The notes under the pieces: generated by a model
Database searches by the model: none
What the model was told of the DNA's origin: nothing
What the model saw: the letters and a program-made list of their open reading frames with translations, nothing else
In this document: one piece after another, positions 6,743-38,964 of the stretch
How the letters are laid out: every line of letters starts with the position of its first letter
Numbering within the stretch: the first letter of the stretch is position 1
Source: Podarcis filfolensis
Taxonomy: Eukaryota
Direction: 5' to 3' (one strand)
Length of the DNA: 64,000 bases
Assembly (NCBI GenBank): GCA_964270895.1
Contig: OZ185448.1
Translations under genes and position numbers: made by a program

Positions 6743-9700
6743 TCAGGGGTATGAAATGCCTTTGTCCCTGGCCACATCTTCCCTAAAGCATCCATCGGAA
6801 GCCACCTGTTGCATGTCAAGGTCCGCCCCGCAGGGTGCACTTGCCCAGGCCAGGTCTCTTACCTCCTGAGCCCCCCAGCCAGGGTGAAAGAGGACCCTGC
6901 TCACCCCAGTGGCTGCTGCAGGGCTGTCCTGGACAATGCTGAGCAAGGGTTTGTAAGGGGACTGCCCATCTAGGCTGCAACCAGCGCTGCCACTCTTGCC
7001 CTGGGGGGCTGTGCCTTCCTGGAGAGCTGAGCTGAAGGCGCGGTAACCAGCCAGGAGGGAGGCTGCTGGGCAGGGGCCAGACTTCCCTGGGGCATGTTGG
7101 GAGGAGCTGCCTGGCCTCGCCTCTTGCTCTGCAGCTGCCATACAGGAGGAAAAGCAAAGCGAATCTTGGGCTTCTGGGAAGACACCCTGGAAAGTAGGGT
7201 GCAGGCTGCCAGTCACAGGTGCAAGGCAAGGCCCTGAGGCATGGCTGAATGGCTGGATTTGGTCCCTGAAAGGAGAAAACTCCTCCTGCTCCTCCTCACA
7301 GACCTGGCTGAAGCCGGCTATGGGCTCCGCCACCAGGCTGCTGAAACACTTGTAGCCCGAGGGCTGGGGGGCGGCTGTGCTGCCACCCCCCGCTTGCAAA
7401 CAGAGTCTCTCCGTGGTGACGGGTTGTGCCTCTGGGGAGAAGAGGCTGTGGCTGAGGGGCAGTGCCAGGGCAGCACTGCCTGGCTGGGACGAAGCCACTG
7501 TCTCTGTGCTGGTGTTGTGATAGATAGGTTCGGAAGAGGTCTCCAAAACACCACTGTGCTTGTCCAGCGGTACATCTTGAGAAAAGGGAAAAGCACTCTG
7601 CATGTGCCCCGGAGCCTGGTCCTTGAGATGTGGGTGCTCGTCCAGGATACCGGTGCCCCCACTGCTCAGGTCCCCACTGAGAAGGTCCCTGAAGAGCTTG
7701 GCCACGGCGTCTTCATGAGGGACCTGGCAGTCTTCCTCTTTCTGAGTTTCTGGCTTGGCAGATGCAATGCAGCTGTGAATATGCACAGGGTGCTCAAGGC
7801 CCATGTTTCCGAATGGCACCACCGCTGCTGTCACACCAGCGGCCACTTTGCTCTTGGCGGGGTTTGGAATCTGGTCCCACCATCCCTTCTTCACCCTGCA
7901 AAGCAAGAAAGCGCCACCCATTAGTCCTTCCCGGCCCTCAGAAAGGGAGAGACAGGGCTCTGCAAGGGCTGCCTCCCCTCCGAACATCAGGAACCAATCT
8001 TCCCCCTTCCGAGGTGACTAGCAGCCAAATGCATGGTTAAAAACACCACGTGAGAGAGCTGAGGAAGACTGTTTGGCTGGAAGGAGGATGAGGAGAAGAA
8101 GACTCAGAAGGGACAGGGGCCACTTTTCTCTTCCTTTCCTGTCAGGGTTGCAGGAAAATGCCTCTGCCAACAAGGCCTGCAACCTTCAAGCAGAAGTGAC
8201 CATTTTTAAATTTGTTTTGCTGTGGGCAAAGGGCAGCCCTGGAGACAACACCTTGCAAGGCACCCAAGACCTACCTGGTGATGCAGAAGAAGCTGAAGGT
8301 AGCCAGGGCCATGATGAACACACACAGCAAGGGGATGAAAATCCAGAGGATAGACCCAGACCTTGGCTCAATCTCTGGAAGGCAAGAAGCATTTTGGTTA
8401 TCTGGGTGTACAATTCACCCTGATGCCCATGGGAGGCAGGCTGGCTGGCTAGCTGACAGACAGGCACCCACCCACCTGGAAAGGGGGCAAAAGATCAGGC
8501 TCAATGCCCAGAAGCCTCAGTTGACAAAGGAGCCCAACTCACACAGCTGGAAAGAATTTCAGGTGATTTGCAGTATTTCTCCTTAGGGTTTTATTTGCCT
8601 ATTGCCTTGTAGGGATGTGGTGAGGTTTATTTGTCGGTTTTAGCTTTTCTCTTGTTAGGGGAATTGCAGCCTTCCAAGTCCTTCTTTTGGAAAAGGAGTT
8701 TCCCAAATTGGGATGTGGGGATGGGCACCGACAGGCACATTTAACGCCTCATGTGTCTGGTTTCTCCTGTACATGCTAATCTAACCTTTAACCCCCTCCT
8801 GCAGTTTCAAGCTTGTTTCCCTTCAGCCAGACTTACCTTGGGCTGGGGAAAGGGGTCCTTGGGTCACCCAGCACCACCAAGGTAAGGGGCAGACAGGATT
8901 TGAACTGCTTATTATTCATGTAGCACCATCACCGCACACAGAGCAAGAGAAGCAAGAAGGTAGGTCTCTGTCCCAGGTAGTCTATCATCTCACCTTTGAC
9001 CAAGGAAAAGACAATAGGCAAGGAGAAGAAAAGAGAGGAGAGCAGAGGAGGTGGAGGAAGCACAAATACAGCTACAGGCAGTATACCGTGAAGTTATATG
9101 CAGAGAAAAACCAGCAGATAATGAGCTTGATGCAGGAAGAGGGAGCACTGGTGGTAGCGGGGCCTGATGTCCTGTGGCACCACACTGAACCTGCTAACTT
9201 CACCCAGGGGTCTGCAGCAGAGCTGCTTTTAGCAAGCCTACCCAGGGCAAGCAATCAAAGTCACTGTGGAATCTAGAAGGTCTTTCCAGTTATTTGTCTC
9301 TAGCCAGGCAAACTGCAACTGCCCCCTGCCTCTCCGCCTGTGTTGTGCCACTGATCGCTTAGTGCATTTTCATGCAGAACATTGTGCCACCTTCTTCTAC
9401 TAAAACAAGTCTTCCAAATGACTAGTATCATGTGCCTTAGTCTTCAGAAAGAGGTACTGTCTACAGAAGAAAATTGTGATGAAATAAGTGAGAGGCCTGC
9501 AGTTTAATTCGATGTCCAGCTTGACTGGAAATGCAAGACCTCAGCAATGCGGGAGAAATGCTGTTGCTCACTCAAAGGGGCTGGATGGCGCACAAACGTT
9601 CCTGCGGGTGGGGTGGGAGTATTTCACAAATCCAGAAGGTTTACAGAATCCAGAAAAGAGAGAGCCCACAATGTGGAGCCCAGAACACACAGGGATGCCA

Positions 9701-12700
9701 ACTGAGATGCCAACAGATTGTTAATAATAAACAGGTGCCTTGCTCAGCCCCTGCCCTAAGCACTTACCGTTTTTCCATGTGTACTCAGCGCTCCAGTCAC
9801 TCCAGATGCCCCTGAACAATATAATTCTCTGCCGCACTTTTGCAACATAGGTGGTTCCTGGCATGAGGTTATCGTCGAAGATTTTATAATGAAAGCTGTG
9901 CGTAGTGTGTTCGTGTAACTTTGGGAGGGGGAAAACAGAAGCAAACAGGTTTACATTATGTGGTCCTTCCCACGCCACAGGAAAACACTGGGAGGGGGTT
10001 CTTCTGGTGAGTGCAATTCTTCTCTTTCCCAACTTTCTATGGAGGAAGATCATTTTGGGATGTGGTAGAAAAGCTTTTGGACTCTTATGTGACAATGGAC
10101 AAGGGAATAAATTTCAGAGAAATGTTTCAAGACAAGCTGCAATGGAAGCTTTGTAGATGAAGTCAAGGGGCTTGAGACCAAATGACAGAAGGCTCCAGGG
10201 TGGAAGGATCTCCTTCCCTCCCTGCTGAGTCTGGCCATTTCCCACCTGAGGGGCGGCGTGGGGAGGGGAGGGCGTGGGGAGGGGGAGACAGCCACAGCCA
10301 CAGCCAGGGACCCAGGGCGGGCTCATTCCTCCATCTAGGCAAGCAAGCAAGAGATGCAATTCAGCCCAGCCAAAGCACTAGGAGTGTGTGGAACAGGACT
10401 GAGGTGGGGGAAGCCTGGCCTGGACAGAGCCCCAGGGGCCAGGTGAAAGAGGCCTGGAGGGCCGCATCTGCCTCCCTTCCCCTAGGTTCTGTGATCCAAA
10501 GCCTTGGGGGCTGGTGGCCCTGCTCTCAAGCCAGTCATAAAAGCCAGCCCACTGCTCTTGTGTGCCCCCCTGGTGAGGGGCATATAATAATTTGCAAATA
10601 TATCTAAAGGCTTTTGGGCCTGCAGTTCGCTGGATCTACAGAGCTGCCCAAGGAAAGTGTTAAGGAAGGGCAGGAAGATGCCATGTCAACTGGCATGAGG
10701 CAGAGTGGGGGGGGGGGCAGGGCCATTCTGAGGCTTTCAGGGGTCCCAACACCTCAACCTCTGCTCAGGACATAGAAGGTCCCCTCCATGGTGTATGTGA
10801 TTGTTTCAGTATTTTTAATTTTAGACTTAATGGCATTTTTAAACATGGATGAGCCTGCCACCTTGGGTTCCCTTTAGGATGAAGGTTTGGATATCAATGG
10901 AATTAATTAACAACAATAAATTTGCAGCACTATTCCAGGTGATCGTACAGGGAGGAGCATGCTGAGAAGGTGTGCCTACCTTGTCCGTCTGGTTTATAGG
11001 CCAATAGGCAACTTCATATTCTGTTTCCGGATTTTCGTGAAGAATGTTCCCTTCTTCATAGTCATCTGCCCAGGTGAAGATGTACGAGTCATCCTTCCTG
11101 TTAACAGTCAGGTTGACAAGCGGTCGGGGTTTTACTGCATTTGGGAAGAAATCAACAAAGAGAAAGATGTGGGGAGGCAAAAGAGGTTGGGGAGTGCGCC
11201 TGCTCCCCACACAGAGCAGCCAACGTGGGCCTCTGGTTTAGAAGGAGGGGAAGGTCAAAGCAGCAGGTCCTTCTCCCTGGAAGGACAGACACACACGTCC
11301 ACCCCCTTCTCTTAATTCCTTCTCGCTGCTGCTTCACACCATACCGTCTCATGGCAATGTTGTGTCCACATTAACAGGATGTTCTCCGTGTTAGAAACTC
11401 AGATATATAAGCTAGGTACCAAAAGGCTCCTTAAACCAGGGTTACAGTCACGAAAACAGAATGTCTAGTTGGCATTTTGGGGCCAAGCAGCTTGGTCCCC
11501 AAAATTTGTTCTGATCGTGCAGATAAAATATCACAGATACAGTTCTAAAGGGTGTGCTGTTAGTGTGTAAAACAGAGAAGATCCAAGGAAAAATGCACCT
11601 GGTGCCTGGGAAATTTCAAATGCTCAATGTGTTGTTCTTATGTTACTGTGTAGGAAAGCACCCTGTGGCTTTGATGTGGCTATAGAGAAACAGGCGGCCA
11701 GCAGGTGTGGGCAAGTAGCAGGCTGTGTCCATTCCAGGTGACCCCCAACATGCATACAGAGGCAAGCCCCTCAATCCATTGGGGTTTTCCACAGTTGCCA
11801 CATATTGTCCTGCTTCCTTGAATTCTGAGGCCTCTCCTAAGCTCTTCAACCAGTTCCCGGGAGTAGCCTTAGCTCTTCTAGGCAGCCATTTTTTTCTCTC
11901 TCCATCAACCTCTCTAACTTCTTCCAAACTGGAATATCCCCCCTCCAGGCACCTGAAGAATAAACCTGCCACCCTTCAAGGCAGTGGCTTTGCCTAACGG
12001 ACTAAGATGGATGCAGGAAGGTCTCTGAGCATTGATTGGTGCTAATCATGAAGACAAACCCTCCCTTCCCACCCCGCTCGTATGCTGCTCCTCTTGTCTT
12101 GTTCTTCAGAGCAGCCCCCAGGAATGCGCAAGGAGGGTCTGCCAGACCAAAGGATCCCTTACCAATGTCATCAGGGTCCACACTCGTCATCTTCCAGATC
12201 TCCTTCTCGTTGGCCTCCAGTGAGAAATGATACTTGTAGTTATGCAGTACTTCAGACTGAATGGTGCAAGTACACTTGGGGGTCACATCCAGTCCTCTCT
12301 CGTTCTTAGGAGAACATTCCCATGATTTCCTGCAACAATGGCAAGACTTAAAAGATGTTTTCAAAGTAGACAACACTTGGATTATTTCTGCCAGAGCCTC
12401 GATTTGGGAAAGCTCAGCCCAAGTGAGAGAGGGGCTTTGCAATGCCTCCAGCTGCACCAGGCTGTGGATTCCCCTGACCCCACCCCCGGAAAGGTTGCAA
12501 GCGTGCAAGAGGGGACAAATCTATGCACCTTGAAAGCTCTCCAGCAACAAATGATCCAGTGAAAAGTATAATGAGAAACCTTTTGGATCCAGCATTTCTT
12601 ATTCTCAGTTTGGAAAACTCAAAGTGACTTCAACTCAGCTCCCAGAGACATTTTGTAAAGAACCCGCATCCATTTTCGGGAAAAGGTTTGGGCTGGCTAC

Positions 12701-15700
12701 TCCTCCCAGGGTGTCTCAGAGAAGGCGAAGCCACCACAGATGCATTCTGCAGCCCTGATATCAGTAGCCACCAGGGCTGGCAGTCCAGGCCCTCAGACTA
12801 CATTCCCCAGGATGGCAAGGGCTTTATATTTACCTGCCATATGTTAAGGGCCTCCTTCTCTGTAAGAGAAGCACTGTGGCACAAGTAATGCTGAGCGAGG
12901 CCCAACAATGTTAATGTCACTTATTTTAATTTCTCTCACTTTTTATATTATTATTACCCTACCCTAGTAAGCTTTCAGGAGGGTACCACCAGCCCCGAAA
13001 ACACCCGACAGAGGAAAGAGATCTGGGGGCAGTTCACATGTTTCACAGCATGACCTACCCTGGGCCATTAACTGTACTAGTCGTTGCAACACGCAGGAGG
13101 AACTCCGTGGGGCAGTCGGTGGAAGCATCCACTTCCCAGTGACAAACCACTTCGGATTCATAGTCTGTGAGGCAACTTGGCTGGATGTCCTTTGAAGACA
13201 CGGCTAGGAAGAGACAGAAGAGTTTGCTTGAGTGCCAGACTGACACCAGCTGTTTGTGCAGTTTTCAGAGGAAGGCGTTTTCCTGAACGAAACTTACTTC
13301 TTCAGAGGAAGAGTCCAACAGAGGCCTACCCAGAAGGAGCCTCCGCAAAGCCCCACTCCAGCCCTCCAAGGTGCCATTGTGTGTTAGCCTGGAAAAGCCT
13401 TAGAAAAAAGACCTTCCNNNNNNNNNNNNNNNNNNNNNNNNNNNNNNNNNNNNNNNNNNNNNNNNNNNNNNNNNNNNNNNNNNNNNNNNNNNNNNNNNNN
13501 NNNNNNNNNNNNNNNNNNNNNNNNNNNNNNNNNNNNNNNNNNNNNNNNNNNNNNNNNNNNNNNNNNNNNNNNNNNNNNNNNNNNNNNNNNNNNNNNNNNN
13601 NNNNNNNNNNNNNNNNNGGTGGGAGGTCTTCCACAGGGCGGGTGCCACTACCGAGAAGGCCCTCTGCCTGGTTCCCTGTAACTTGGGCTTCTCGCAGTGA
13701 GGGAACTGCCGGAAGGCCCTCGGCGCTGGACCTCAGCTGACTGCTGCTTCTTTTTCCTCCTCCAAGTGCTTTGGGTTGCTCACCTCACCATTTATAATGC
13801 TCTCCTAAGAACATGAAAGTAGCCCTGCCGCTGGATCAGGCCAAAGGGGCCCATCTAGTCCAGCATCCTGCTGTCTCATTGAATGACCAGATGCCCCAGT
13901 GGGAAGCCTGCAGGTGGGATTCAAGCGCAAGAGACTCCCCACCTCCTGTGATTTCCTGCAACTGAGATTTGGAAGTGTTTCCGTGTCTGTTCTGAATCTT
14001 CCAACATTAAGCATCACTAGGTGTCCTTGACTTTTAGCATTATGAGAGAGAAAATAAAACTTCCCTATCTCATCTCCTTATCTGCTGCTGCTTACCTGTC
14101 TAAAATTTCTAGCAGGCTTGTTCTACTTTTCCGCCACCCAAGCCACTCCTCTGCTTCTCACAGTGGAATCCTGGGCATGTCTACACAGAAACAATTCCCA
14201 CTGAGTTCTGTAGCAACTTGAAGACTGAAAGGTCTATCATTCCAAAGCTTAGGGCCTTAGGCCAACAAGAAACTATTTCTTCTTCTTCCTGCAACAGACT
14301 AAGTGGCTCCCCCTGCTGGAACTTGCTGCGAAATGCTCAGGCAGGATTGCAGCTTGCGAGATGGCATCTTTGCCACGGTCTGCTTCCTTGCACCGCTTCT
14401 CCTGTTTCTGGCGTTCCTACAGCAACATGCCCCATTGACCTCTCTGCAACATGGCCCCATTGACCTCTCTGCTCCAGGCTGAGCCAGGACATCTCCAGCT
14501 CAGCTTGCGCAACCCTCCGGATGTTTATTTTCCTATCAAACATGCACAAGGCAGCTTCGCCTCTAGTTTCGGTTCCTCAAAAGCAGCAGAGGGAGCAAAC
14601 TTCCCTTTTCATCTTCAGCAGAAAAGCCATGAAGAAATGAAACAGACTAGATGCTCCCCAGGAGGTGAGGGGAGAGGTGGCATCCGTCCCCCAAGGGAGA
14701 GGGAGCCCCTTCCTGCCAACCCAGCCACATTCCTACACTGACTCAGGAAACTCTCTCTCGCTCCCCATCCCGTGAAATCTCAGGGCAGACCAAGTTGACT
14801 CTCTCAACATGGAAGCAGCCACAAGGAAGGACCACTCTGCCTCCTGTCCTCATAGTGGCCAACCAGGTGCCCCAAAAGGAAGATGCTCACAAACAGGAGC
14901 ATCCCCCCACTGCTGTTTCCAGTAAGTGGCATTATTCAGAGGCATTTACTGCCTCTGATACTGGAGGGAAAACCATCATCATGGCTAGTAGCTATTGGGA
15001 GACCTCTCCTCCACCTCTACTGTGGATTTGTCTCATCCTGTCTAAGTCGCCCAAGTGAGAAGCCATCACTGCCTCTTGTGGAAGTGAGTCCCATAATGTT
15101 TTAAATGTGTGGGGAAGACCTTATTTTTGTCTTCCAACATCCTTGGACGTCCCCAATGAGTTCGCCTGTTAATGAGGGAGGGGGAGAAAAACATCTGCCC
15201 AATATACCGTAAAAATTAAACTGTTGCGCTACTAAAGAGAAGTAGGAAGGATCTCCTGAGGTGGGAGACAGATGGAAAATCCACAGACTCAAGAAGAACA
15301 ATAGAATCACAGAATTGTAGGGTTGCTAGTGAGCCCACCTGCCTGCAGTGCAGGAATCACAGCTAACAACTGGGCTCCATGGCCTGGCTAGCAGACTGCT
15401 CCACCTCTACCTGCACCCCACTGGGAAAGCCTTCGCTCAGGGACAGAGCACCTGCTATGCATGCAGAAGGTCAAGGTTCAATCCCAAGTGGCAGCATTTC
15501 CAGGGAAGGCTGGAGAAACCTTGCCTGAAACCTTGGAAAGCAAGTGCTTATAGTCCGTGTAGATCATGGGTAGGCAAATTAAGGCCTTCTAAATCCGGCC
15601 CATGGACGGTCTGGGAATCAGCGTGTTTTTACATGAGTAGAATGTGCCCTTTTATTTAAAATGCATCTCTGGGTTATTTGTGGGCCATAGGAATTCGTTC

Positions 15701-16517
15701 TCCCCTCCTCAAAATATAGTCCGGCCCCCCACAAGGTCTGAGGGACAGTGGACCGGCCCCCTGCTGAAAAAGTTTGCTGACCTCTGGTGTAGAAAATATG
15801 GGCCGACCACCGAGCCCCCCCCCCCCGCCCCGGCTGGACACTTACTGATGATGGCAGGAGGAACCTAGCCTGTTTATGGAAACAGGAGGATAAATGGGGT
15901 GTGTGTGGTGGGTGCCTGGCTTATTGTAGAGATTCAAAACTCTGCAACGACCGTCTTAAGGGTATGGTGGTAAAACCCACGGCAACCCCAGACCCAGCAA
16001 AACTTCTTAAACACCTCCTCACCAACCCACAACACCAGGAATTAGAGCCAGAAATGCTCCTGGCACAGGAGCCAAATCCTAGGGGTCTCCCTTTCCCACC
16101 AGTTGATGGGCGTTGCCTTTCAAATGGTGTGGGTGCACAGCATCATGTGATCGATTATGGGGCGGGGCTTAACCCCCCCCCCCATTATATTGTATTCAAC
16201 TTGGCACGCCTGCTTCGTGGAAACCTGACCCAAGGAAGCAACCCGCCCAAGCCTTGAAAAGCTTCCAGGAGGCTGAACCTCGGCAGGAGGGTCCCCGCCG
16301 CCCCTCAGGGAGTCTCTGGGTGCGCAACTGCTACGGCCGGGGGAGCCTCGCTCTCCGCTCGGCTGGCCGCGCCCGGACTCTCCCTATTGCTGCCGAGGGA
16401 AGCGGCTTTCCTCCGCGGAGACTTACTGTGCCAAAGCGAGCAGGCGAGGAAGACGGAGAGGAGGAGGAGGCCGGGCTTCCTCCGGGGACCCCCGAAACCC
16501 GTCCCGCCGTCGGCCAT
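6743..16517 (-). CDS. IL4R: Interleukin-4 receptor alpha, full-length membrane form (7 coding exons, 653 aa)
   Basis: Exons: 16517-16427 signal peptide (MADGGTGFGGPRRKPGLLLLSVFLACSLWH); 13203-13059 (CLTDYESEVVCHW); 12329-12163 (ECSPKN..KCTC); 11134-10980 (VKPRPLVNLTV); 9918-9768 (WSDWS); 8374-8275 TM exon of 100 bp (ILWIFIPLLCVFIMALATFSFFC); 7895-6743 (Box1 KKGWWDQIPNPAKS, then GYKCF, GYRAF, PYKPL). All junctions are GT-AG and phase-compatible, total 1962 nt. Head-to-head with NSMCE1 as in other amniotes. Confidence 0.92.
13418..13617. other. Assembly gap (200 N)
   Basis: Run of n inside IL4R coding intron 1. Confidence 1.
13618..13738 (-). mobile_element. L2 fragment adjoining the assembly gap
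   Basis: Homologous to the two other L2 copies; absent from the matching site in unit B (about 23422-23450). Confidence 0.7.
15565..15786 (-). mobile_element. hAT (Charlie-like) MITE inserted into a SINE
   Basis: Homologous to 48151-48476; 7/8 TSD GTGTAGAT/GTGTAGAA. Confidence 0.8.
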
Positions 16518-17280
16518 CCGGAGAGTCGGGAACGAAGGGCGCCGGGCCCTGCCGGGAAGAGGCAACAACGTCGAGCGGCCCGCTTCCCTCCTCCTGCCAG
16601 TGCCAGCCCGGCCGCCAGGCGCGGAGCCAGGCGAAGCGGAGCTCAGGAGACGCCCGCCCGCCCCCGCTTGGCTTGACCTGGCTGCCCGTAGTGCCGGAGC
16701 CCCTCCCGCTGCTGCCTGCTTGGGTGACGGGCTGCTCCACTCGGTGGGTGGGGAGGAAGGGCGGGCCTCCCTCCGCGCGTCCCGGGGCGGCTCTCTGAGC
16801 AAATTCGGCCAGCGCCCGCCTCGTCCCGCCTCCCCCGGGGTTCCGGCCAGCGCTCGTGCGCAAAGCGAAAGGGAATCCCGGAGGGGAGAGGGCCCGGGGA
16901 GGGGGGGGGCGGAGACCCGACGGCGACCGGGAGCCCTTCGCGACTCGCCGACTCCAGCCCCCTTGGGCCACGCGCCCTCCGCTGCTACGGCTGCTGTCCG
17001 GGAAGCGCTGGGTTACGCCCCGGCCCTCCTCCTGGGGCGCGGATTTGCATGCCGAACCCGGCCCCTTCCCGCCTTTGACGGGAATTCCCAGCCAGCTAGG
17101 AAGCCCTCCCTGGCGGGGCTCGCACAAAACTCGGCTACAACAGACTGCGATCGGTGTCTCCTGAGCATGTGCAGAGTGCTCGCGGCGCGGGACGACCACG
17201 CCAGCCCCGTGGTGTGTGCGCGCAGCCAAGTCAGTCCGGGCTCTGGAGTCGTGGCGCTGCAACCCTTTTGGCCTGTTTCA
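16250..17280 (-). promoter_or_regulatory. CpG island, putative IL4R promoter
   Basis: CpG-dense tract over and upstream of the IL4R ATG; perfect kappaB palindrome GGGAATTCCC at 17080-17089, octamer ATTTGCAT at 17043-17050, GAS-like TTCGTGGAA at 16214-16222. Confidence 0.65.
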
Positions 17281-17689
17281 GCTGCAGCTGAGCTCATCTA
17301 CTCTTATTACATTTCCTATAAGAGCAGGTGAAAGTTGACCAGGTAGATCATTGGAGGAGGGGGGAGAAGCAGGAGTCTATGGGGCTCAGGAGGGGTGCTA
17401 AGAAGGAAGAGGTGGGGTTTTTGGAAGTAGAAAGGTAGGAAATGGCTTAACTGGTGCTTGCATCAAGGTTTCCACATGCACCTCCTCTTCCCACTGAACA
17501 GTACTGTCACTGGGATGCAGTTACTCATTGACAAGTTAGCCAGTGTGCTGGAGTGGATCTTCCTTATTTAGACCTTTTCTGTATTGCCTAATTATAGATA
17601 GGCAGCCACGCCACTTTATACTAAGCCAGACCATTGTCTACACTGATTGGCAATCGCTCCCCAAGGCTTTCAGGTAGGGTGTGTCTCTC

Positions 17690-18075
17690 AGCCCTACCTA
17701 GAGATGCTGGGGACAAAAATGGAATGGCAGAAAAAATTATTTGAGTACGCTGAGATGGCAAGTCTAATGGGGAAAGTTAGGAATCATGGCCACCAAAAAT
17801 TTAACACAGAATGGGACAAATACAGACAATGCCTTAAAGATCGTTGTAAACATCTGAAATCTGAAATGACTCCTGCAAGGTGACATAACTTATGGATATA
17901 TTAGATAAATATAAATTAGATGTTATTCAATAAGCAGTTAATATAGAATTGTAGAGGACCCACGTTCAGGTGGAGGGAAGTCTTGTTACTTTACTATATC
18001 TTTGATGGAGAGTGATAATTGGGATGTATACTGAAAAATCAATAAAGATTAAATGCAATTTTAAAAATAAATAAA
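17690..18075 (+). mobile_element. L1 3' end
   Basis: WQKKLFEYAEMASLMGKVR..KFNTEWDKY resembles the squamate L1 ORF2 terminus; A-rich tail follows. Confidence 0.65.
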
Positions 18076-18153
18076 TGCTGGGGACTGAACCTGGAACCTT
18101 CTACATACATACAAAGCAGTCACCACTGAGCTGCAATGACCCTTCCCTGACTA

Positions 18154-18395
18154 CAGTGGTACCTCAGGTTACAGACGCTTCAGGTTACAGACGCTTCAGG
18201 TTACAGACTCCGCTAACCCAGAAATAGCATCTCGGGTTAAGAACTTTGCTTCAGGATGAGAACAGAAATCGTGTGGCAGTGGTGCGGCGGCAGCAGGAGG
18301 CCCCATTAGCTAAAGTGGTGCTTCAGGTTAAGAACAGTTTCAGCTTAAGAACTGACCTCCGGAACGAATTAAGTTCTTCACCAGAGGTACCACTT
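18154..18395. mobile_element. Tc1/mariner (Tigger/pogo-like) MITE
   Basis: TA|CAGTGGTACCTC..GAGGTACCACTT|TA, with three tandem CAGGTTACAGAC units. Confidence 0.85.
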
Positions 18396-19113
18396 TATAT
18401 ATAAAAATAACTATGTGAACATATCTCTAAAGCAGTATGCTGAAAGCGACAGGTATTACAGAACCACACAATAAAACCATCAGGACTAGTTTCTGATAAA
18501 TAAATGCTGCTATCAATTCCTTCACCTTCGGATACATCTCCCCACTCAACCCCTCCCACCAGCCTGGGCTCAAACAAACACAGATCACTCCAAAAATCTC
18601 AGAAGAAAGGGGGCTTCCTGGAACCTGCTGACACTGCCCTGGTCTTGCTTTTACGAATAGACCCCATGCAGACTGTACTGTGTCCTGTTCAGCACTCGGC
18701 TTACTTGCACTGCACACACCCGGGTCCAGGAGGCAGCAGGTTTCGTTTGGTGAGTTTCCCGGGGGGTCCAAAGGGTGGTGCATAAAACTGAGTATAGAGG
18801 TGTCCTTTCCCTGGCCTCTGCATCCCTCTCATCCAAGGACCTTGGGCCACTTGCCATTTCTCAAGCTAGCGTACTTCACAGGGTTTCTGGGAAGGTAAAA
18901 GAGGTTTCTCGCACAGCACCCCCAGCTCCTCAGAATGACCTTGCTCCCCTTCACCCCACACCCCTCGTTCTGGCCTGAGTTGCAGTTCATTTCAGTGTTA
19001 TTGCAGATCAGCATGTATCTGTGAGAAGCAGTGGTTTGGTATCTGTCCATCTTCAGGCGTGTTCTTGAGGGACTACGTGGCACAGAAACACACGTGCACA
19101 ACAAAGCCTGTGT

Positions 19114-19270
19114 CATAGCTGTCAATTTTCAGATTTGAAAATAAGGGATCAGCAGCCTCACCTGTCCCAGGGACAGTATACGGGATATCTAACAATCCAG
19201 GATAGCAGCGGGAAGCAGTGCTGGAATAAGGGAATTTCCTGCAAAAAAAAAAGGAAGGTTGACAGCAATG
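19114..19270. mobile_element. hAT MITE
   Basis: TIRs CATAGCTGTCAA / TTGACAGCAATG and perfect 8-bp TSD GCCTGTGT. Confidence 0.85.
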
Positions 19271-20242
19271 GCCTGTGTTAGTGTACTCTTTAATATAGTT
19301 CAGTCCAGGTATGAGGCGGGAGCCTTGCAAAGCTTGTGCTGCCTGCCAAGTCAGTTCCTGGAAGGGGTAGAGGCATAGGGGGCCCAATGAGTTATTCCTT
19401 CCAAATCAACTTTAAGGGTGCCAAGCACAACTCCCTTGGACCTCTGTGTGTGAAATTTGGCAGGCTTCATCCCCTGAAAAGGGGATGCTAAGCTCACAGA
19501 TTCCACCCATTTCTGCCTGAAAGGAGAAAAGGGTTAATAATTTGGTGCTCCCCTAGTATTGTTTTCTGTTATCAGCAGCCCAATTTACAATAGCCCTATA
19601 TTGGAAACAATCTATAGAACTCCCCACTGAGATCTGGTTAAATAGTATTTGGAGTGTGGCTCTGTTGGAAGGCCTTACTTGACACAAAAGTGTAATTAAA
19701 GGCACTTCAAGGATACACACTTTTGGTGATGTTGGCTTCCTTTCTTTTCCTTTATAAATGAGACGGAAGATACTTTTATTCCACTTTCAACACAGGAATC
19801 TCTGTGGAGAGGCTACTTGAATTGATAATACATAACTTATTGCATGTGCACTATGTACTACGTATGGAATTTAATAAGAATGGACCACTGGACAAGTTAA
19901 TGTAGTTGTGTGTTCTTGTCTTTATTTAAATGAGAAACAATAAAAATCATTGGGGTGACTTCAGAAAGAGGTATTGTCTACAGCAGAGAATTGCACTGAA
20001 TTAAGTGAGAGGTCTGCATATTAATTTGATGTCTAGCTGACTGGAAATGCAAGACCCCAGCAATGTGAGAGAAATGCTGTCACTCACTTAAAGGGGCCGG
20101 ATGATGCACAAACGTTCCTGTGGGTGGGGTCGGAATATTTCACAAATCCAGAAGGTTTACAAAATCTAGAAATAAAGAGCCCACAATGTGGAGCCCAGAA
20201 CACACGGGGATGCCAACACATTGCTAATAATAAACAGGTGCC

Positions 20243-23200
20243 CTACCCGATCCACCCATCTGTTTTCCAACTTATCGGGATGCTCCAATCACTCCAGGTG
20301 TTCCCGAGGAAATAATTTTTCTGGCGCACTTTAGCAAAATGGATCCTTGCTGGCATGAGACTCCCTATGGCAATTTTAAGTTGCGTGTCCGTCGTCATGC
20401 GTTTGCGTGCCTTTGGAGGGGGGAAAAAACCAAGAAGCAAACAGGTTTACATTATGTGGTCCTTCCCACACCACAGGAAAACACTGGGAGGGGGTTCTTC
20501 TGGTGAGTGGAATTCTTCTCTTTCTCAACTTTCTATGGAAGGAGATAATTTTGGGATATGGTAGAAAATTGCTTTTGGACTCTTATGTAGCAATGGACAA
20601 GGGAATGAAAGCTTTGTAGATGAAGTCAAAGGGCTTGAGACCAAATGATAGAAGGCTCCAGGGCAGAAGAATCTCCTTCCTCCTGAGCCTGGCCATTTCT
20701 CACCTGAGGGGTGGGGGGACAGCCACAGCCAGGGACCCAGGGCTGGGCTCATTCCTCCACCCAGACAAGGAAGAAAAGATGCAATTCAGCCTAGCCAAAG
20801 AACTAGGAGTGTGTGGAACAGTAATGGGGTGGTGAAAGAGGCCTGGAAGGCTGCATCTGCCACCCCTCCCCTAGGTTCTGTGATCCAAAGGAAAGCAATG
20901 GCTTGGGGCTGGTGGCCCTGATCTCAAGCCAGTCTACTCTGAGAAGTCATAAAAGCCAACCCACTGTTCTTGTGTGTGCCCCACCTGTGAGGGGCATAAA
21001 ATCATCTGCCAAATATATTGTTATAGATTTAGGATAAACCCTAGAAATTAATAAATGCTACTCCTGTAGTGATGGCTGAAAACCACATATACTCCCCTTT
21101 TCTCAAATGCAGCTCTGCACACTGGTCTGCATAGGCAACTAGGGCAATTTGCCTGTCTATTGCCACAAAGAGCAGCTGAACATATGTATTGTTGTGTGCA
21201 TGTGGTGGGGGGGGCAATGACTTTCACTAGAACAAATGGATTCTGTGAATGGTCCTTGATAGACATCAGAGAGAACAATGAAGGCACTTTCTCATGCAGA
21301 GCTGCCCAAAGAAAGTGTCATGGAAAGGCAGGGAAGATGCCATGTCAACCAGCATGAGGCAGAGCAGGGGGGTGGGGAGAGGGGTATTCTGAAACATCAA
21401 CCTCTGCTCAGGACACAGAAGGTCTCCCCCCCACAGTGTATGTGGTTGTTTTAGTATTTTTAATTTTTGTTTTAATGGCATTGTTTTAACATGGATGAGC
21501 TTACCACCCTGGGTTCCTTTGGGAGGAAGGGTGGGATATAAATGTAATTAACTGATTAACAATAATAAATTTGCAGCACTATTCCAGGTGATTGTACAGA
21601 GAGGAGCATGCTGGGAAGGTGTGCCTACCTTGTCCTCCAGCATGCCTTCTTGCCCAAAGGCAACTTCATAGTCTGTTTCCGAATTTTTATGGAGAATGCT
21701 CTCTTCATTATAGCCATCTTCCCAGGTGAGGATGTATCCGCCATCCCCCATCTTAAGTTTCAGGTTGACAGGCTGTCGGGGTTTCACTGCATTCAGGAAG
21801 AAGACAACAAAGAGAAGGATGTGGGGAGGCAAAAGGGGCCCCTGCTCGCCTCTCAGGGAAGACAACACGGGCCTCTGCTTTGTAAGGAAGGGCTGGTCAA
21901 AGCGGCAGACTTTTCACCCTGGAGGACAGACCTCAACCTCTCCAAGTTCTCTCCAGAACTGGAGTATCCCCCTCCAGGCACCTGAAGAAGGGGGCTCTCC
22001 ATTGCAAAGGTTTCTGCCACAATAAGCCTGCCACTGTTTAAGGTGGTGACTTTGCATAACGTACTAAGGCGGATGCAGGAGCAGCTAAGGAAGGTCTCTC
22101 AGCATTGATTGGTGGTAATCGTGAAGACAAATGATCTGTGCCCACCACACTTGTATTCTGCTACTCTTGTCTTGTTCTTCAGATCAGCCTCTAAAGATGC
22201 GCAAGAAGGATCTTGCAGACCAAAGGATCCCTTACCAATTTTACGAAGGTCCTTAATTGCCTTCTTCCAGATCTCTTTCCCATTGGCCTCCAGCGAGAAA
22301 CGATACTTGAAATTATCTAGTACTTCAGACCGAATGGTGCAAGTACACTTGGGGGTCACATCTAGGCCTCTCTTGTTCTTAGGAGAACACTCCGACGATT
22401 TCCTGGAACAATGGCAAGACTTAAAAGATGTTTTCAAAGTAGACAACACTCGGATTATTTCTGCCACAGCCTCGATTTGGGAAAGCTCAGCCCAAGTGAG
22501 AGAGGGGCTTTGCAATGCCTCCAGCTGCACCAGGCTGTGGATTCCCCAGGGAAAGTTGCAAGCGTGCAAGACGACATAAATCTGTGCACCTTGGAAGTTC
22601 TCCAACCCAAGTGGTCCAGTGAAAAGTAGAATGAGAAACCCTTTGGATCCTGCGTTTCTTATTCTGAGTTTGGAAAACTCACAGTGGTAAGGAGGGTACC
22701 ACCAGCCCCAAAAACACCCAACAGAGGAAAGAGAAGATCGGGTGGCAGTTCTCACATTTCATAGCATGACCTACTTTTGGCCACTGAATCGATTAGTCAT
22801 TGTAACATGCAGGAGGAACTTCTTGGGGCAGTTGGTAGAGGCGTCCACTTCCCAGGAACAACCCACTTCGGAGTCATAGTCTGTGAAGCACCTTGGCTGG
22901 ATGTCCTTTGAGGATACGGCTAGAAAGAAACAGAAGAGTTTGCTTGAGTGCCAGACTGACACCAGCTGTTGTGCGTCATCTCCAGATTTTCAGAGGAAAG
23001 CAGTGTAGGAATGTTTTACTCAATGCAACTTACATATTCAGAGGAGGCCTAGCCAGAAAGGGCCTCTGCAAAGCCACACTTTGGCCCTCCAAGACTCCAC
23101 TGCAGAAAGGGATAGAATCTCTGCTCTACTCCTGTTTTTTCAGGCAGAGCCGTAATTACAGGGGGGCTAGCCAGGTTTTTTTGCCCTGAGTGAAGCCTCC

Positions 23201-24638
23201 AGATGGGTGCCATTGAGGCTCTTAAGCTCTGTGTGTGTGTGCCAAGCTGTGTCTTTGACAAGGGTGAAATAAAGCCTAGATCTGAGTCTGGCCGAGGGGG
23301 ACCTTGTGTGTGTGTGTGTGTGTGTGTGTGTATAGTTTTTAAAAAATACTCCTGGGGTAGAGAATGCATTTTGTCTGAGTCTGGAAAGCTAACTCTGCCT
23401 CTGCCTTAGAAAAAAGACCTTCCAAGGACAAGCCTTAAATTTCTATGTTGACTGCTGCTTGTTTTTCCTCCTCCGGGTACATTGGGTTGCTCCCCTCAAT
23501 GTTTATAAAGCTCTCCTAAGAACATGAAACTAGCTCTGCCACTTGATCAGGCCAAAGGGGCTCATCTAGTCTAGCATCCTGTTCTCTCAGATGCCCCAGT
23601 GGGAAGCTTGCAAGCAGTATTCAGACACAAGAGACTCTCTACCTCCTGTGGTTTCCTGCAAATGGGATTTGGAAGGGTTTCCATGTTTTGATTAGAGGCA
23701 GAGTATGGTCATCATGGTGGTAGCCACCGACAGTGCTGCCCTCTTTGAAATTGGATTAAAGCAATCAAATTTGTTGGCCATCATTGCCTCCTGTGGGAGC
23801 AAGTTCCACATTTTAACTCTGTGCTGGATGAAGTTCTTCCTTTTATCTGTTCTAAATCTTCCAACATTAAGCATCACTAGATGTCCTTGACTTTTAGCAT
23901 TATGAGAGAAAGAAGGAAACTTTTCTCTATCCAGTTTCACTCCCCCTGCTTTGCGAAATGCGCAGGCAGGACGCAGCTTATCTGAGCTAGTGGTGCCCCT
24001 CGGTTCATTTCCTTGACTGCTTCCTTGAGCCACTTCCTATGCAACACAGCTGTGCTCCAGATTGTGCCACGACATCTCCAGCTCAGCTTACTCAGCCCTC
24101 CGGAAATGAAACAGCCACAGGACTAGCAACCCCCCCCCCCCCCGGAGGTAAGGGGCAGTGTCTGTCTCCCAAAGGTGAGAGGCCCTTCCCAACTGCCCAG
24201 CCGCTCTCCTGTACTGACTCTGGGATGTCGATCTCTCTCTCCTGCATCCCCTGAAATCTCAGGGTGGACCAAGTGGACTCCTTCAAGATGGAACTGAACA
24301 AAGCTCTGGTAACAAGGAACCATTTTAGGGGGCTTTCCATTTGGAGTTGTCGCACGTTGAAATGTTAGGCCTCCTGGAAACCTGACCCAAGCAGCCTCAG
24401 CCCATTTCAACCCGTTCAAGCTTTGGAAATCTTCCAGGCAGCTGAAACCTGGCAGGAAGGTCTCCGCCGCCCCTCCTGGCCTCGCTCTCTGCCCAGCTGG
24501 CTGCCCAGCTGCCCTCCTGCAGAGGGAAGCAGCTTTCCTCCACGGAGACTTACTGTGCCAAAGCGAGCAGGCGAGGAAGACGGAGAGGAGGAGGCAAGGC
24601 CTCTGGGGCCCCCCAAGGCCCGTCCTGCCGTTGGCCAT
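20243..24638 (-). CDS. Secreted IL-4R-alpha-like paralog, ectodomain only (5 coding exons, 240 aa)
   Basis: Exons 24638-24554 (signal peptide), 22919-22775, 22402-22236, 21786-21629, 20410-20243, total 723 nt, open frame with GT-AG junctions. Six D1 Cys and WSDWS are retained. The donor after WSDWS is lost and the frame reads ...SWKTDGWIG-TAG. AATAAA on the minus strand at 19921-19926 and 19775-19780. Expression is not shown by the sequence. Confidence 0.75.
23515..23910 (-). mobile_element. CR1 LINE 3' fragment (shorter copy at about 13806-14050)
   Basis: GHLVMLNVGRFRTDKRKNFIQHRVKMWNLLPQE resembles the CR1 ORF2 C-terminus; present in both duplication units. Confidence 0.75.
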
Positions 24639-25601
24639 CCGGAGAGCTGGTGATGGAATGTGCCTGGGAAGAGACAACAACGTTAATGCCTTTTGAAAGC
24701 CTGTTGGCCGCCTCCAGATGCGTGCCTGTGGAGGTAGACTGCCACAGGCAATGGGGGCTCTGCAGGTTTAGCTGAACCCTAGAGCGATCTTCACTACGGA
24801 ACGCCACCCACTTACCTGTGTGAAGGGATTAGGGAGCCCCCCTTTTATTCAAGGCCCAACTGAGAGCAAGGCCCAGCCCCTTTGCAACAGTCATAGCCAG
24901 CATGCAACAGGCAGAAGCCACGAGATATTGGCCAGTTGCCCAGCTGTGGCCAACCACTTGTCCTGCCCTTCAGGCCTTCGGCTTCTATGAGGAGCTGGGA
25001 GGAGACTGGGCCAAGGGGGCTCAGATGCTAGGGCCCCCAAACACTCACCGCTACTGACCCCCTTTCTATGTGGCTTTCCGGGTCTCTTTGCTTTGCTGTA
25101 CTTGCCGCTAATGCTGCCTGGTCGCTTCTACAGGGAGGCTCAGCCCAGGGATTTTGCTGCCTGGGGCACAGCAGCAGCAACTCAGTGTATAGCACCTCTG
25201 AATGTGGACAGAGCTGGTTTTAAACTTAGGAACCTTTTATTTCAGATTAGTAGGCAGAGCAGCTCCCAATAGAATATAACAGCCATGGAGCGGGTTTCTA
25301 GAGCTTATTGAGAGATGGAGGAGTGAGAGATGGTGTTTTTCTGATCAAATCCCCCTCATGCACAAGTCACCCTCTTTCTCTCCCAGCCAACTCAGGCGAG
25401 AAAGCCAATGGTCCTCTGCTAAGTTGCTACTACAATTTAGAGACCCCCCTTTGTTTTGACTGCATTTTTCTCAAACAAGCTATTCAATGCTTCAGGAGCC
25501 TGGATAGCAAAAGTTGAACCACATTGCAGTGCTCTCTCTCACACACATTCACTCACCAATACGAGTGGATGGAACCTCCATTTTCTCAGCCACAATGTCA
25601 C

Positions 25602-25642
<41 letters not shown>

Positions 25643-26130
25643 TTTATGGTTGCCCCAGGCACTCTGAGTGGCTTCTAAGAATTATAAAAGCATAATAAAA
25701 CATCCAACATTAAAACCTTCCCTTTACGGGTCTGCCTTCTAAAATTCCCATAGTTCTTTATTTCCTTGACACCTGATGGTGTTCCACAGGGTGGGTGCCA
25801 CTACCAAGAAGGCCCTCTGCCTTGTTCCTTATAATCCAGGAGTGCCATCTTAGCCCCACAACCATGGGTGCCATGCAACGTGCATGGCCCTGGTGCTGCT
25901 ATTTGTGGGTGCCTGGCCCCTTCATGGGGAATTTTGCCGGTGCTGAGGCACCCAGAGCCCCGGGGGAGTCGGCACCTATGTTTTATCTTCACTTCTCACA
26001 GTGAGGGAACTGCCAGAAGGCCCTCAGAGCTGAATGCTGGGGGTGGAGACGCTCCTTCAGGTAAACCGTTTAGGGCTTTAAAGGTCAGCATCAACACTTT
26101 GAATTGTGCTCGGAAACGTACCGGGCACAA
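25602..26130 (-). mobile_element. L2 LINE 3' end with (AAT)n tail
   Basis: Reverse-orientation homolog of 51920-52335. Confidence 0.75.
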
Positions 26131-32646: not shown

Positions 32647-35600
32647 CTACGACCACCAGAAGCTGACGGAGAAACTTATGTCCAGGGACCGCACATAGTG
32701 CCAGTAGCTAACTGGGATGAACAGAACTTCTCCAGGGCTCAAGATGCAATCTTGAAATGCAGCTGCTTTGAAGTTGGGGAATTTCACCAAGTCAGGGTCT
32801 TCCACATCCACCTGGAAATGAAAGAGAAAACGCTGTCTTAATATAATTCAGACAGGACTATCCACGGTAGTCTCATTCTTTGCACCAAGAGGCTTACAAT
32901 TTAGGTGACAGGAGAGAGGGGCTGGATGTGGAGGGAAGCAGGGAAGGGGAAGAAGAGGAAGAGGTGAGTGTTGGAGCCTGGCTGCAGTTGGGGATGGCAA
33001 CTAGGATACGGGGCCAGTCTTCAGGGCGAACTCCATGATTTCCTTCATGGAATAATTCAGCCCCTATTATGAGGGACTGACTACTGGGTGCCCACCTGGC
33101 TGGTGTTGTGAAGGAGGTGGCCTTCATGTGGATAAAGGTTTTCAGATTCCTGAGGAGAATACAGGCGGACATATTTCCGTCCCATTACCTGGAGAAAGGA
33201 ACGTCGAAACATTTGTCAATAATCCGAGCTCAACTTTTCTAACTAGCATTCCTTTGCTCAGTATCCGGAGTGTGCCCTGACACACAGGATTTCTGCAAAT
33301 GGGGTCTGATCAACCTCTTGCCATCATTTGCAGAAAAAGGAGCCCAGACATCCCCGTCCAAAGTTTGCAGGCCAACAATAGGCACTCTCCCCTGCCCCAG
33401 TGCCTTTCTAATTTCAGTTCTCAGCACTCCCTCTCTGCTCTTCTCCTTGACAGCCCATCAGCACCTCAGTCCAGCTGAGATCTCTGGCTGCAGAGAGCCT
33501 TCCCTGAGCAACTTCTAGAGGGACGCTTCTCTGGTGACTGTTGTTGCTGCCACCCATAGAACAGGAAGCAGCTTCCCTTGAAAGGCAGGAGGATACAGAA
33601 GTCCTGCCTCTGATTGGCAACTGCCCTCCTTACCCCCCGCACTGCAGCCTGTCACAGAGGCCCTACCTGGACTAAGAAGTTCTGCTGCGGATCCTGATGC
33701 AGAGGGGAGACAGTCCCTGGTGGACCAAACCAGGCGTTGACAGTGATGTCCTCTTCATCTCCTTCGCCCAGGCAGCAATAGTCAGGGATGCCAATATCCA
33801 GCTTCAGCTCTGGGATCTGGCAGCAAATTGGTTAGAAAGGAAAGCATTGTACACTAGCTTGACATTTATTTAAAGTATTTATTTAGGGACGCGGGTGGCA
33901 CTGTGGGTTAAACCACAGAGTCTAGGACTTGATGATCAGAAGGTCGCGGTTCGAATCCCCATGACGGGGTGAGCTCCCGTTGCTTGGTCCCTGCTCCTGC
34001 CAACCTAGAAGTTCGAAAGCATGTCAAAGTGCAAGTAGATAAATAGGTACCGCTCCGGCGGGAAGGTAAATGGCATTTCCGTGCACTGCTCTGGTTCGCC
34101 AGAAGCGGCTTAGGCATGCTGGCCACATGACCTGGAAGCTGTACGCCGGCTCCCTCGGCCAATAAAGCAAGATGAGCGCCGCAACCCCAGAGTCGGTCAT
34201 GACTGGACCTAATGGTCAGGGGTCTCTTTACCTTTTTAACCTGCTGTCTATTTTGTTTGTGATCTTCGGATGAAGAGTGGCAAATAAATAATCCAAAGAT
34301 GGCTCACGGCAACCATTAAAACGAGACCACAAGATAAGAGATGGTGAGGCAAAGGATGCAAACAGAAAAAGGCGGAGTTTCAGGCATCAACCACTTGGGC
34401 AAAGCAAATGCCAACAGAAAAGGGAAGAGGCTTTGTAAAGTGCCAGGAGGCAGCTATCAAGGAAGGGGCAAGATGGGTCAGAGCACAGAAAAGGCCTGAT
34501 CCTGCACCTCAGCCAAGGCTCTCTTTACTAGTGTGGGTGGCGAAGGGACAGCATTCAAACCAAACAAGGTCTCCCTCTGTTCCAGCATTAGTTGTTATGG
34601 GGATTCTCTGCTGGGGCCAGGCTGGGGGGGGGGCTGTTCTATACAGTCTTGGGTTCCCTCCTCCCCTGCTTCCTCAGGACATCAGGAGAACAGCTGGCAA
34701 CAGGATGTTGGCTGGCATTAAACAACATGAGTTTGATTAGCTAGAAGTGACTCAGTGGGTTTTGGCAGACGGCCCACCTAGAGTCAGGGAGGAGTTTTCC
34801 TACCAGGTGGATTGGACACCTACGAGAGGAGAGGTCTACTGTGATGCTCGCAGCCCTTTGCACACGTCTCTGAAACCTGTTTGGCCCACGTGCCTTTTCC
34901 CATGGACTGTGGAGGATGCCTGGGGTGGAGTTTCCAGAGAAATGCTTCCCTGAAAGGCGTGGTGGCACTTTGGATCATTTCCAGATATGAAATTTTGGGG
35001 GTGGAGAATTCACTGCATTCTGGTGAACCCGGCATCTGTTTCCTCCCATCAAATAAGAACTAGAAGAACCATCCCTTTGGTTTACCTGGTCAAAGAGCTG
35101 GTGCTGAGCAAGGTATCCCTTATGGTCCTGCAAATTGAAGGGAGGGAAGAGAGAGAGAGAGGAGTGAGTGGATATCCTTTATATACAGAAAAGTCAACTG
35201 AACAGCAGCAAACAATTTGGTGGGGAGTCCAGAGCCCCACCCCACAAACTCTACCACTCACTGGTCAGCTCCCTGCTCCCCACCCCAAGGAGCTCTGCCA
35301 GGCCTGCCCTCCCTTTCCCAGTCTCATTGCAGCCATCCATGTTACTCAGAGGCTGGCAGGTGCTCACATAAATAAGTTCACTAATATTTTATTTAAGGAG
35401 AAGCCTTTCCTGCTTGCTGAGTTCCCAGGGCGGAATACAACAATGGAGTTAACACAGACTCAACCCAGCATAATTTGTCCTGCTCTTCCCAGCCAGGCTG
35501 TTTTGTGGGAGGGAGAAGATCCAGACCTCATTCTCAATATACTGTCTGATGAAGTCATCCACGGTCATGAGGGTCTGGGACCACTCCTCATCTGTGTAGC

Positions 35601-38500: not shown

Positions 38501-38613
38501 GCTGCCGCTTCCTCCCCCGCCCCCCAAAGTAGAGAGAAGGACATCTCCTGAGCCCCTCCTACTGCTAGGCACCCCCCCCCACATTCATTTGCAGGCTAGC
38601 AGGGTATGTTTGG

Positions 38614-38964
38614 TGGAAGCGGGTGGCGCTGTTGGTTAAACCACAGAGCCTAGGGCTTGCCGATCAGAAGGTCGGCAGTTCGGATCCCCGTGACGGGGCG
38701 AGCTCCCGCTGCCCACTCCCTGCTCCTGCCAACCTAGCAGTTCAAAAGCACCTCAGAGTGCAAGTAGATAAATAGGTACCGCTCCGGCGGGAAGGTAAAC
38801 GGCGTTTCCGTGGGCTGCTGTGGTTTGCCAGAAGCGGCTTAGTCATGCTGGCCACATGACCCAGAAGCTATACGCCGGCTCCCTCGGCCAATAAAGTGAG
38901 ATGAGCGCCGCAACCCCAGAGTCTGTCACAACTGGACCTAATGGTCAGGGGTCCTTTACCTTTA
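38614..38964 (+). mobile_element. Sauria SINE
   Basis: Same family; TSD-like AGGGTAT(G/A)TTT flanks. Confidence 0.9.

Follow-up and report, generated by a model that had tools for sequence, protein, structure and literature searches.

Two IL4R-type genes in tandem

The window analysed here, a 64-kb stretch of the Podarcis filfolensis genome (assembly GCA_964270895.1, contig OZ185448.1), carries two genes of the interleukin-4 receptor alpha (IL4R) type on its minus strand, with reading frames intact in both. Self-comparison revealed a tandem duplication along one diagonal (9442-16571 versus 19959-24683). The large open exon at 6746-8017 (minus strand) matches interleukin-4 receptor subunit alpha of two lacertids, P. 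raffonei (P0001), with 96% identity, and Lacerta agilis (P0002), and exon borders were determined from a tblastn placement of P0001 on the window and from the splice sites. Copy A, with seven coding exons, is the complete IL4R of the signalling type. Copy B lies about 3.7 kb upstream of copy A and has only a signal-peptide exon and four ectodomain exons; the GTAAGT donor after its exon 5 is gone, the frame continues through five codons to a TAG, and the transmembrane and tail exons have no copy B counterpart within the duplicated unit. As described below, the exons of copy B change at about twice the rate of its introns.

Features of the two copies are as follows; exon borders were obtained from P0001 and the splice sites unless another basis is given.

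9442..16571, minus strand: duplicated unit, copy A side (self-BLAST)
16427..16517, minus strand: copy A exon 1, start codon and signal peptide
13059..13203, minus strand: copy A exon 2, start of domain 1, Pfam IL4Ra_N (also from Pfam)
12163..12329, minus strand: copy A exon 3
10980..11134, minus strand: copy A exon 4, start of domain 2
9768..9918, minus strand: copy A exon 5, the WSDWS exon, followed by the GTAAGT donor
8274..8374, minus strand: copy A exon 6, transmembrane segment, absent from copy B (P0001 placement, self-BLAST)
6743..7894, minus strand: copy A exon 7, cytoplasmic tail with box-1-like WWDQIPNP and stop, absent from copy B (96% identity to P. raffonei IL4R)
19959..24683, minus strand: duplicated unit, copy B side (self-BLAST)
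24554..24638, minus strand: copy B exon 1, signal peptide
22775..22919, minus strand: copy B exon 2 (also from Pfam)
22236..22402, minus strand: copy B exon 3 (also from Pfam)
21629..21786, minus strand: copy B exon 4
20260..20410, minus strand: copy B exon 5, the WSDWS exon, GT donor lost (loss common to P. raffonei, L. agilis and Zootoca vivipara)
20243..20245, minus strand: copy B stop TAG after the read-through tail DGWIG (same ending in P. muralis P0003; TAG kept in Lacerta and Zootoca)
19921..19926, minus strand: AATAAA, possible copy B polyadenylation signal about 320 nucleotides (nt) past the stop (consensus match only)

Pfam family PF09238 (IL4Ra_N) was detected in exon 2 of copy A (E 2e-8) and in exons 2 (E 2e-8) and 3 (E 2e-4) of copy B, and among solved structures human IL-4R alpha chains are the best relatives (E 1e-18). 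All cysteines and the WSDWS motif, as in type I cytokine receptors, are kept in A and B across all four genomes. A transmembrane segment and the box-1 motif WWDQIPNP are present in copy A only (exons 6-7). Going by its exon content, copy B is related through its ectodomain alone and does not count as a signalling receptor. Because the donor is lost, the stop is conserved and transmembrane exons are absent, the product of copy B is expected to be secreted; the gene presumably encodes an IL-4 receptor alpha-like protein of this kind, which may bind IL-4/IL-13. Exon 4 has the sequons NLT and NQT in copy A, read as NLK and GQEGML in copy B (11080-11134, 10980-11000), and the linker is DPDDI in copy A versus DLRKI in copy B, a reversal of charge.

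Age of the duplication

The window was compared with the corresponding loci of P. raffonei (L001), L. agilis (L002) and Z. vivipara (L003). A B-type copy lies upstream of IL4R in all three genomes, and every B copy is without the exon-5 donor and has the TAG at the identical place. In P. muralis a 239-residue 'IL4R alpha-like' product (P0003) is annotated with the same read-through stop. Since A and B are both present in three genera, the duplication is old. By this distribution, both duplication and truncation are older than the Podarcis/Lacerta/Zootoca split, and the premise of a recent duplication, made in a first-pass annotation of the window, is wrong. A search with the A ectodomain found short relatives in lacertids only. 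Identity to snake IL4R proteins is 40-44% for A and 33-36% for B, so that B is the derived copy. When fixed A/B differences were polarised with snakes, few clean sites were obtained (7 A-ancestral, 4 B-ancestral, 7 ties) and overall identity was used instead; the Elgaria IL4R protein was left out, its N-terminus being misannotated. No paper on IL4R duplication in lizards was found in a literature search.

Zootoca has a third tandem copy, B2, between B1 and IL4R (L003:13484-18772). B2 has lost exon 4 together with most of introns 3-4, its exon 3 joins a truncated exon 5 out of frame, and the annotated 207-residue product (P0004) terminates in intron-derived residues. The 3.6 kb upstream of exon 2 did not reveal exon 1 of the P. 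raffonei B copy, although intron 1 of copy B in the window is only 1.6 kb. The L. agilis IL4R protein P0002 stops at 389 residues, and its last residues align to another frame of the last exon (window 7536-7586), which suggests a frameshift in that exon, either real or assembly-made. The contigs of 'organism D' have G at 20259 where the window has T, so that DGWIG becomes AGWIG as in P. muralis P0003; judged from this match, 'organism D' is probably P. muralis.

Exon and intron divergence between the copies

Exons of A and B differ by about 20% overall (exon 1 11-14%, exon 2 18%, exon 3 16%, exon 4 21-24%, exon 5 31-40%), against 12-13% for alignable non-coding DNA. Intron divergence was taken from local BLAST alignments and from columns in which every sequence is represented. 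Aligning entire introns globally with MAFFT was rejected, as it paired unrelated DNA over large indels and inflated divergence to 0.25-0.5. Pairwise replacement (dN) and synonymous (dS) divergence between A and B is 0.29 and 0.31, respectively, and protein identity is about 57% over the ectodomain.

The excess of exon over intron divergence, which the first-pass annotation had reported, is real: the ratio of dN to intron divergence, dN/K(intron), is 2.04 (Fisher p 8e-9 for dN versus intron K). The counts behind it were borne out. Exon 5 has 60 mismatches in 151 ungapped positions (9768-9918 versus 20260-20410), with 18 of 50 residues identical; residues shared in the other exons number 32/49, 41/55 and 27/53. 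Along the 177 columns of the intron stretch compared with it (9936-10110 versus 20433-20607) there are 10 mismatches and 4 gap columns. This stretch is not typical, however: across 2890 non-coding positions in local alignments the divergence is 12.2%, and windows of 60 nt lie anywhere between 2% and 28%. The changes are also not nearly all non-synonymous as had been stated, Nei-Gojobori pS being 0.24 and pN 0.23. Among the residues described as spared, the cysteines, AKVRQ and WSDWS are kept; tryptophan is kept mostly.

Acceleration in copy B

The rates in the two clades and on the stem between them were obtained as parsimony changes per site on a fixed species tree of four A and four B sequences.

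A clade: introns 0.127; exons 0.121; codon positions 1, 2 and 3, 0.113, 0.123 and 0.127
B clade: introns 0.122; exons 0.255; codon positions 1, 2 and 3, 0.264, 0.279 and 0.223
Stem: introns 0.086; exons 0.161, highest in exon 5

B exons change at 2.1 times the B intron rate, at all codon positions (Fisher p 3.6e-14). The exons of copy A change at the intron rate. Introns of A and B change at an equal rate and thus provide a clean local neutral yardstick. The same asymmetry is seen between orthologs: three independent B pairs have dN/K(intron) of 1.85-2.25 (p 7e-5 to 8e-8), and A pairs have 0.83-0.96, with dS/K(intron) of 1.0-1.25. Between the window and P. raffonei, 22 of 591 exon sites of copy B differ versus 31 of 1967 intron sites (p 0.002). 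Since B introns align nearly fully among B orthologs, the excess is not an effect of alignment selection. In DNA contigs of a further Podarcis species, exon 2/3 pieces are 4.1-4.5% different and intron-only pieces 0.5-1.6%. The acceleration peaks in the second fibronectin-type domain, encoded by exons 4 and 5.

Changes in B exons are richer in transversions than those in B introns (55:50 versus 126:69), and few of them (9/105) fall at CpG; such a spectrum argues against a simple mutational cause. CpG decay was rejected as the source of the B excess on the same count. A-to-B conversion was also considered as the source of the B exon changes and rejected, A-state singletons being 13/72 in exons versus 22/101 in introns.

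Codon selection tests

Site models were fitted to the eight sequences with our own GY94/F3x4 likelihood implementation. For exons 2-5 of all eight sequences, the one-ratio model M0 gave a dN/dS ratio (omega) of 1.23, and M2a was favoured over M1a with a likelihood ratio test (LRT) value of 37.6 (p 7e-9). The same test on exons 4 and 5, in which no conversion was seen, gave 13.2 (p 0.0013). With the B clade alone the LRT was 14.9 (p 6e-4), about 21% of codons being at omega of about 4.6; with the A clade alone it was 0.96, with omega 0.95 and no class of omega >1. A three-class branch model (A, B, stem) gave no gain over one omega in either ectodomain half, and therefore no post-duplication burst is claimed. 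The diversifying selection proposed in the first-pass annotation is supported by these tests, but for copy B only: the acceleration is limited to this copy, in which it dates from before the separation of Podarcis, Lacerta and Zootoca, and the class at omega of about 4.6 fits B alone.

Codons with posterior >0.95 cluster at the exon 2/3 junction, in the middle and at the end of exon 3, at the end of exon 4 and in the stretch before WSDWS. In the alignment to human IL-4R alpha, the high-omega clusters are located at loops L2 and L3, the linker, and loops L5 and L6; L2, L3, L5 and L6 are reported as IL-4 contact loops in the work on 1IAR and 3BPL. About 4.1% of random point changes in B give a stop, and none is found in 151 changes (chance 0.002). 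The exon indels in intact B copies are all multiples of three. As the rate is above the intron rate, relaxed constraint cannot be the cause.

Gene conversion between the copies

Sites that group by species rather than by paralog are clustered at two places.

12253..12446, minus strand (copy B partner 22326-22519): post-speciation conversion tract across the intron 2/exon 3 border, taking in the 3' end of the intron and the 5' part of the exon (clustered species-pattern sites)
10151..10193, minus strand (copy B partner 20614-20656): cluster of species-pattern sites in intron 4, adjoining the intron stretch compared above (site patterns)

Divergence between the window's A and B in the tract at 12253-12446 is 1-4%, versus 11-15% between A of Podarcis and A of Lacerta. 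In the Podarcis/Lacerta quartet, the counts of paralog-pattern to species-pattern sites for introns 1, 2, 3 and 4 are 143:3, 21:4, 43:1 and 44:4, respectively. Non-coding divergence is 0.09-0.19 between A and B, 0.05-0.09 among A copies and 0.06-0.09 among B copies, and the pattern of concerted evolution is confined to the two tracts. The low divergence of exon 3, the clean look of the 9936-10110 stretch and the unusual likeness of some introns are due to these short interlocus tracts. Thus, the intron-limited gene conversion offered earlier as an alternative to selection holds locally, in two short tracts; elsewhere, introns included, sites sort by paralog. As judged from these site patterns, gene conversion is real but minor, and the overall pattern is not explained by it. 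The last 100 nt of intron 4, beside exon 5, are alike in all sequences (3-7%), which suggests conservation of this stretch and not something recent.

Observations at variance with selection on copy B

Several observations weigh against selection on the residues of copy B. Gene-wide ratios remain close to one: A/B dN/dS is 0.95 overall (exon 4 1.8, exon 5 1.1, exon 3 0.4), M0 omega of the B clade is 1.17, and that of the stem, 1.2-1.8, is not significant. A dN/dS at or below 1, which the first-pass annotation had set against selection, is therefore what is found gene-wide (about 1), but not at the level of sites or against the intron yardstick. The site tests come from our own implementation and from eight sequences, and conversion in exons 2-3 can inflate them.

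Two small runs that were tentatively taken as RNA gave contigs over both exons and introns, at a depth of 2-5, and none of the expected splice joints is among the contig rows listed from these runs. These runs show neither expression nor silence of copy B. One contig continues from exon 5 into the downstream DNA, which is compatible with read-through and equally with plain DNA. The annotation of copy B in P. raffonei (210 residues, L001:1-5020) ends 81 nt past exon 4, omitting the WSDWS exon, and exon 5 may be unused in some transcripts. The annotated 3' ends conflict, as the P. muralis product has exon 5 and the P. raffonei gene range does not.

Synonymous change in copy B is also raised. B ortholog pairs have dS/K(intron) of 2.0-2.3. 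In codons with identical residues, synonymous divergence between the window B copy and L. agilis B is 0.18 versus 0.08 in introns, and 16 of 118 four-fold sites of B differ where about 9 are expected (7/144 in A). Selection on residues does not predict this rate. Non-synonymous third positions and multi-hit codons account for it in part, but not wholly. A higher CpG density of exons was rejected as its cause, since A has it too. The remainder may leave room for older exon lineages, deep alleles, or multi-nucleotide changes carried by selection. In copy B, a second sample with the same species label shows differences from the window at 4 or more sites of exon 5 (at least 20306, 20346, 20372 and 20385) and at 3 or more of exon 3 (at least 22258, 22318 and 22363), which hints at notable within-species variation in the B sequence. 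The three exon-3 sites are G-to-A on the gene strand, in the window haplotype only.

Comparison of explanations

We consider it probable that recurrent positive selection has acted on an old and truncated IL-4R alpha paralog, presumably a secreted one, and that short conversion tracts are superimposed. A partial tandem duplicate has kept the ectodomain and lost the exon-5 donor, and its IL-4R alpha-like product would be secreted. Its coding sequence has been replaced at about twice the neutral rate over the whole observable history, most strongly in exons 4-5 and in the loops aligned to IL-4-binding loops; recurrent diversifying selection would be the cause. Copy A meanwhile drifts at about the neutral rate, and short interlocus conversion removes divergence from exon 3 and from parts of introns 2 and 4. 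The selective agent would be cytokine co-evolution or parasite antagonism. That the pattern instead combines old exons with young introns, conversion having homogenised the non-coding DNA and exons 1-3 while selection removed tracts over exons 4-5, appears unlikely to us. Such a history would agree with the A/B synonymous divergence of 0.28 in identical-residue codons and with 13 of 50 four-fold sites differing, about twice the intron value of 0.12; with the rate of 0.29 at third positions of exon 5 on the stem, versus 0.086 in introns; and with the conversion at 12253-12446 and 10151-10193 and the exon-3 residues common within species. However, intron sites sort by paralog (143:3, 21:4, 43:1, 44:4), hence the introns have escaped homogenisation since the lacertid radiation. 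In B-B ortholog pairs the exon excess is equally strong, where A/B conversion is irrelevant, the intron rates of A and B are equal, and copy A has no exon excess.

Deep balanced exon alleles with recombined introns, as in the major histocompatibility complex (MHC), or raised mutation in the mature-mRNA parts of B would account for the equal, about two-fold, rise of dN and dS in B. The presumed 3' untranslated region, about 340 nt past B exon 5, differs at 16 of 339 sites between two Podarcis genomes versus 31/2038 in introns, species-tree-incompatible sites are more frequent in B exons (3/591) than in B introns (1/1967; p 0.04), and the exon differences of the second same-species sample point the same way. 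We nevertheless hold these alternatives to be improbable: B exon changes are mostly novel singletons (52/72) and not shared old variants, germline mutation limited to exons has no known mechanism, and the spectrum leans to transversions, away from known mutational signatures. There is a small chance that the mature-mRNA parts of B (the exons, perhaps also the 3' untranslated region) are under a process beyond residue selection, such as MHC-like balanced allelic lineages or an exon-directed mutational or RNA-templated input. Neutral decay of a partial duplicate under relaxed constraint is very improbable. B exons outpace the introns by a factor of 2.1, which neutral decay could not bring about; in five genomes the frame has stayed open (chance 0.002), with in-frame indels only; cysteines, WSDWS, signal peptide and stop are all conserved; and M2a is favoured over M1a in B. 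In favour of decay are a gene-wide omega of about 1, a Zootoca B2 copy without exon 4 and frame, and guessed RNA contigs giving no sign of B splicing among the rows listed.

Other features of the locus

Homology of A and B ends about 50 nt upstream of the start codons (16571-17300 versus 24683-25200), and a GC-rich upstream region of copy A is not shared by copy B. On these two observations, the copies probably have different promoters. The sole run of N in the window lies in copy A.

13418..13617, no strand: assembly gap, 200 N, in copy A intron 1

The run is 215 nt upstream of the copy A exon-2 acceptor and affects no exon or frame. Its flanks are colinear with copy B (offsets 9713 and 9711 on the two sides), and intron 1 of copy A measures 3223 nt including N versus 3220 nt in P. 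raffonei. These positions were left as N, with no letters substituted. A repeat adjoining the gap (13620-13743) has an inverted match at about 52.0-52.3 kb (52016-52264, 86%) and a further copy upstream of copy B (25653-25827). A TG/CA-type microsatellite at about 23170-23390 in copy B faces the gap site of copy A. Two intron stretches of copy B, 21440-21613 (intron 4) and 23528-23875 (intron 1), have contig depths in the thousands in DNA runs and are therefore high-copy repeats. An interspersed repeat of about 350 bp is present in five copies, 87-91% alike and one of them inverted (33886-34235, 38606-38964, 40056-40313, 46145-46495 and 62324-62670).

Relation to known systems

In snake venom and serum protein genes, exons outrun introns in tandem paralogs, a pattern termed accelerated evolution (PMC6609765, PMC2711939, PMC6062510), with KA/KS up to 1.74 and intron KN of 0.05-0.06 (PMC6609765). 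The lizard locus resembles the phospholipase A2, small serum protein and three-finger toxin genes of snakes in its tandem paralogs, in exon divergence above non-coding divergence between them (20% versus 12%), and in the use of intron K as the neutral yardstick. It differs in that pairwise KA/KS is about 1 (0.95 over the mature protein, above 1 only in exons 4 and 5), in that one paralog is accelerated, and in that the acceleration is sustained across three genera rather than a burst. The gene concerned is a cytokine receptor ectodomain, unlike the toxin and inhibitor genes of snakes. Thus, exon-over-intron acceleration is of a known kind, here confined to one paralog and sustained. At MHC class I and II genes, exons including their synonymous sites are more divergent than flanking introns, and alleles are under balancing selection. 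Compared with that pattern, the likeness here concerns paralogs and orthologs, not alleles.

In mammals, IL4R alpha can be secreted through alternative splicing (PMC3017759). Like the mammalian soluble IL-4R alpha, which modulates free IL-4, lizard copy B has the ectodomain only, without transmembrane and signalling parts. The mammalian soluble form is derived from a single IL4R gene by splicing or shedding, whereas in lizards it would be a separate duplicate of 57% identity, its truncation fixed by donor loss. A dedicated decoy of IL-4/IL-13 is known in IL-13R alpha 2, a separate gene that binds ligand without signalling; it is of a different receptor subfamily, membrane-anchored with a short tail, ancient and widespread. 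Lizard B is also a separate gene in the IL-4/IL-13 system, but a recent, lineage-specific duplicate in comparison. In rodents, replacement rates of IL4R alpha are raised extracellularly and not cytoplasmically, and IL-4 is under diversifying selection at receptor-binding epitopes (PMC3017759); in primate IL4R no selection was detected (PMC5569703). The ectodomain of lizard copy A, with omega of about 0.95, is like the fast mammalian IL-4R alpha ectodomain. Unlike in mammals, the strong signal is in the lizard-specific paralog and not in the signalling receptor.

A pairwise dN/dS of about 1 can conceal a true excess over the neutral rate, and here the intron yardstick revealed the excess. If the explanation by recurrent positive selection on copy B is true, lacertids made soluble IL-4R alpha a gene of its own, and selection in the style of an arms race has acted on B for tens of millions of years with the neighbouring receptor drifting. 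The locus would then be a natural experiment on how constraint is partitioned between a decoy and its parent receptor. It would also point to a selective agent in reptile type-2 immunity, either co-evolving IL-4/IL-13 or parasite or viral antagonists.

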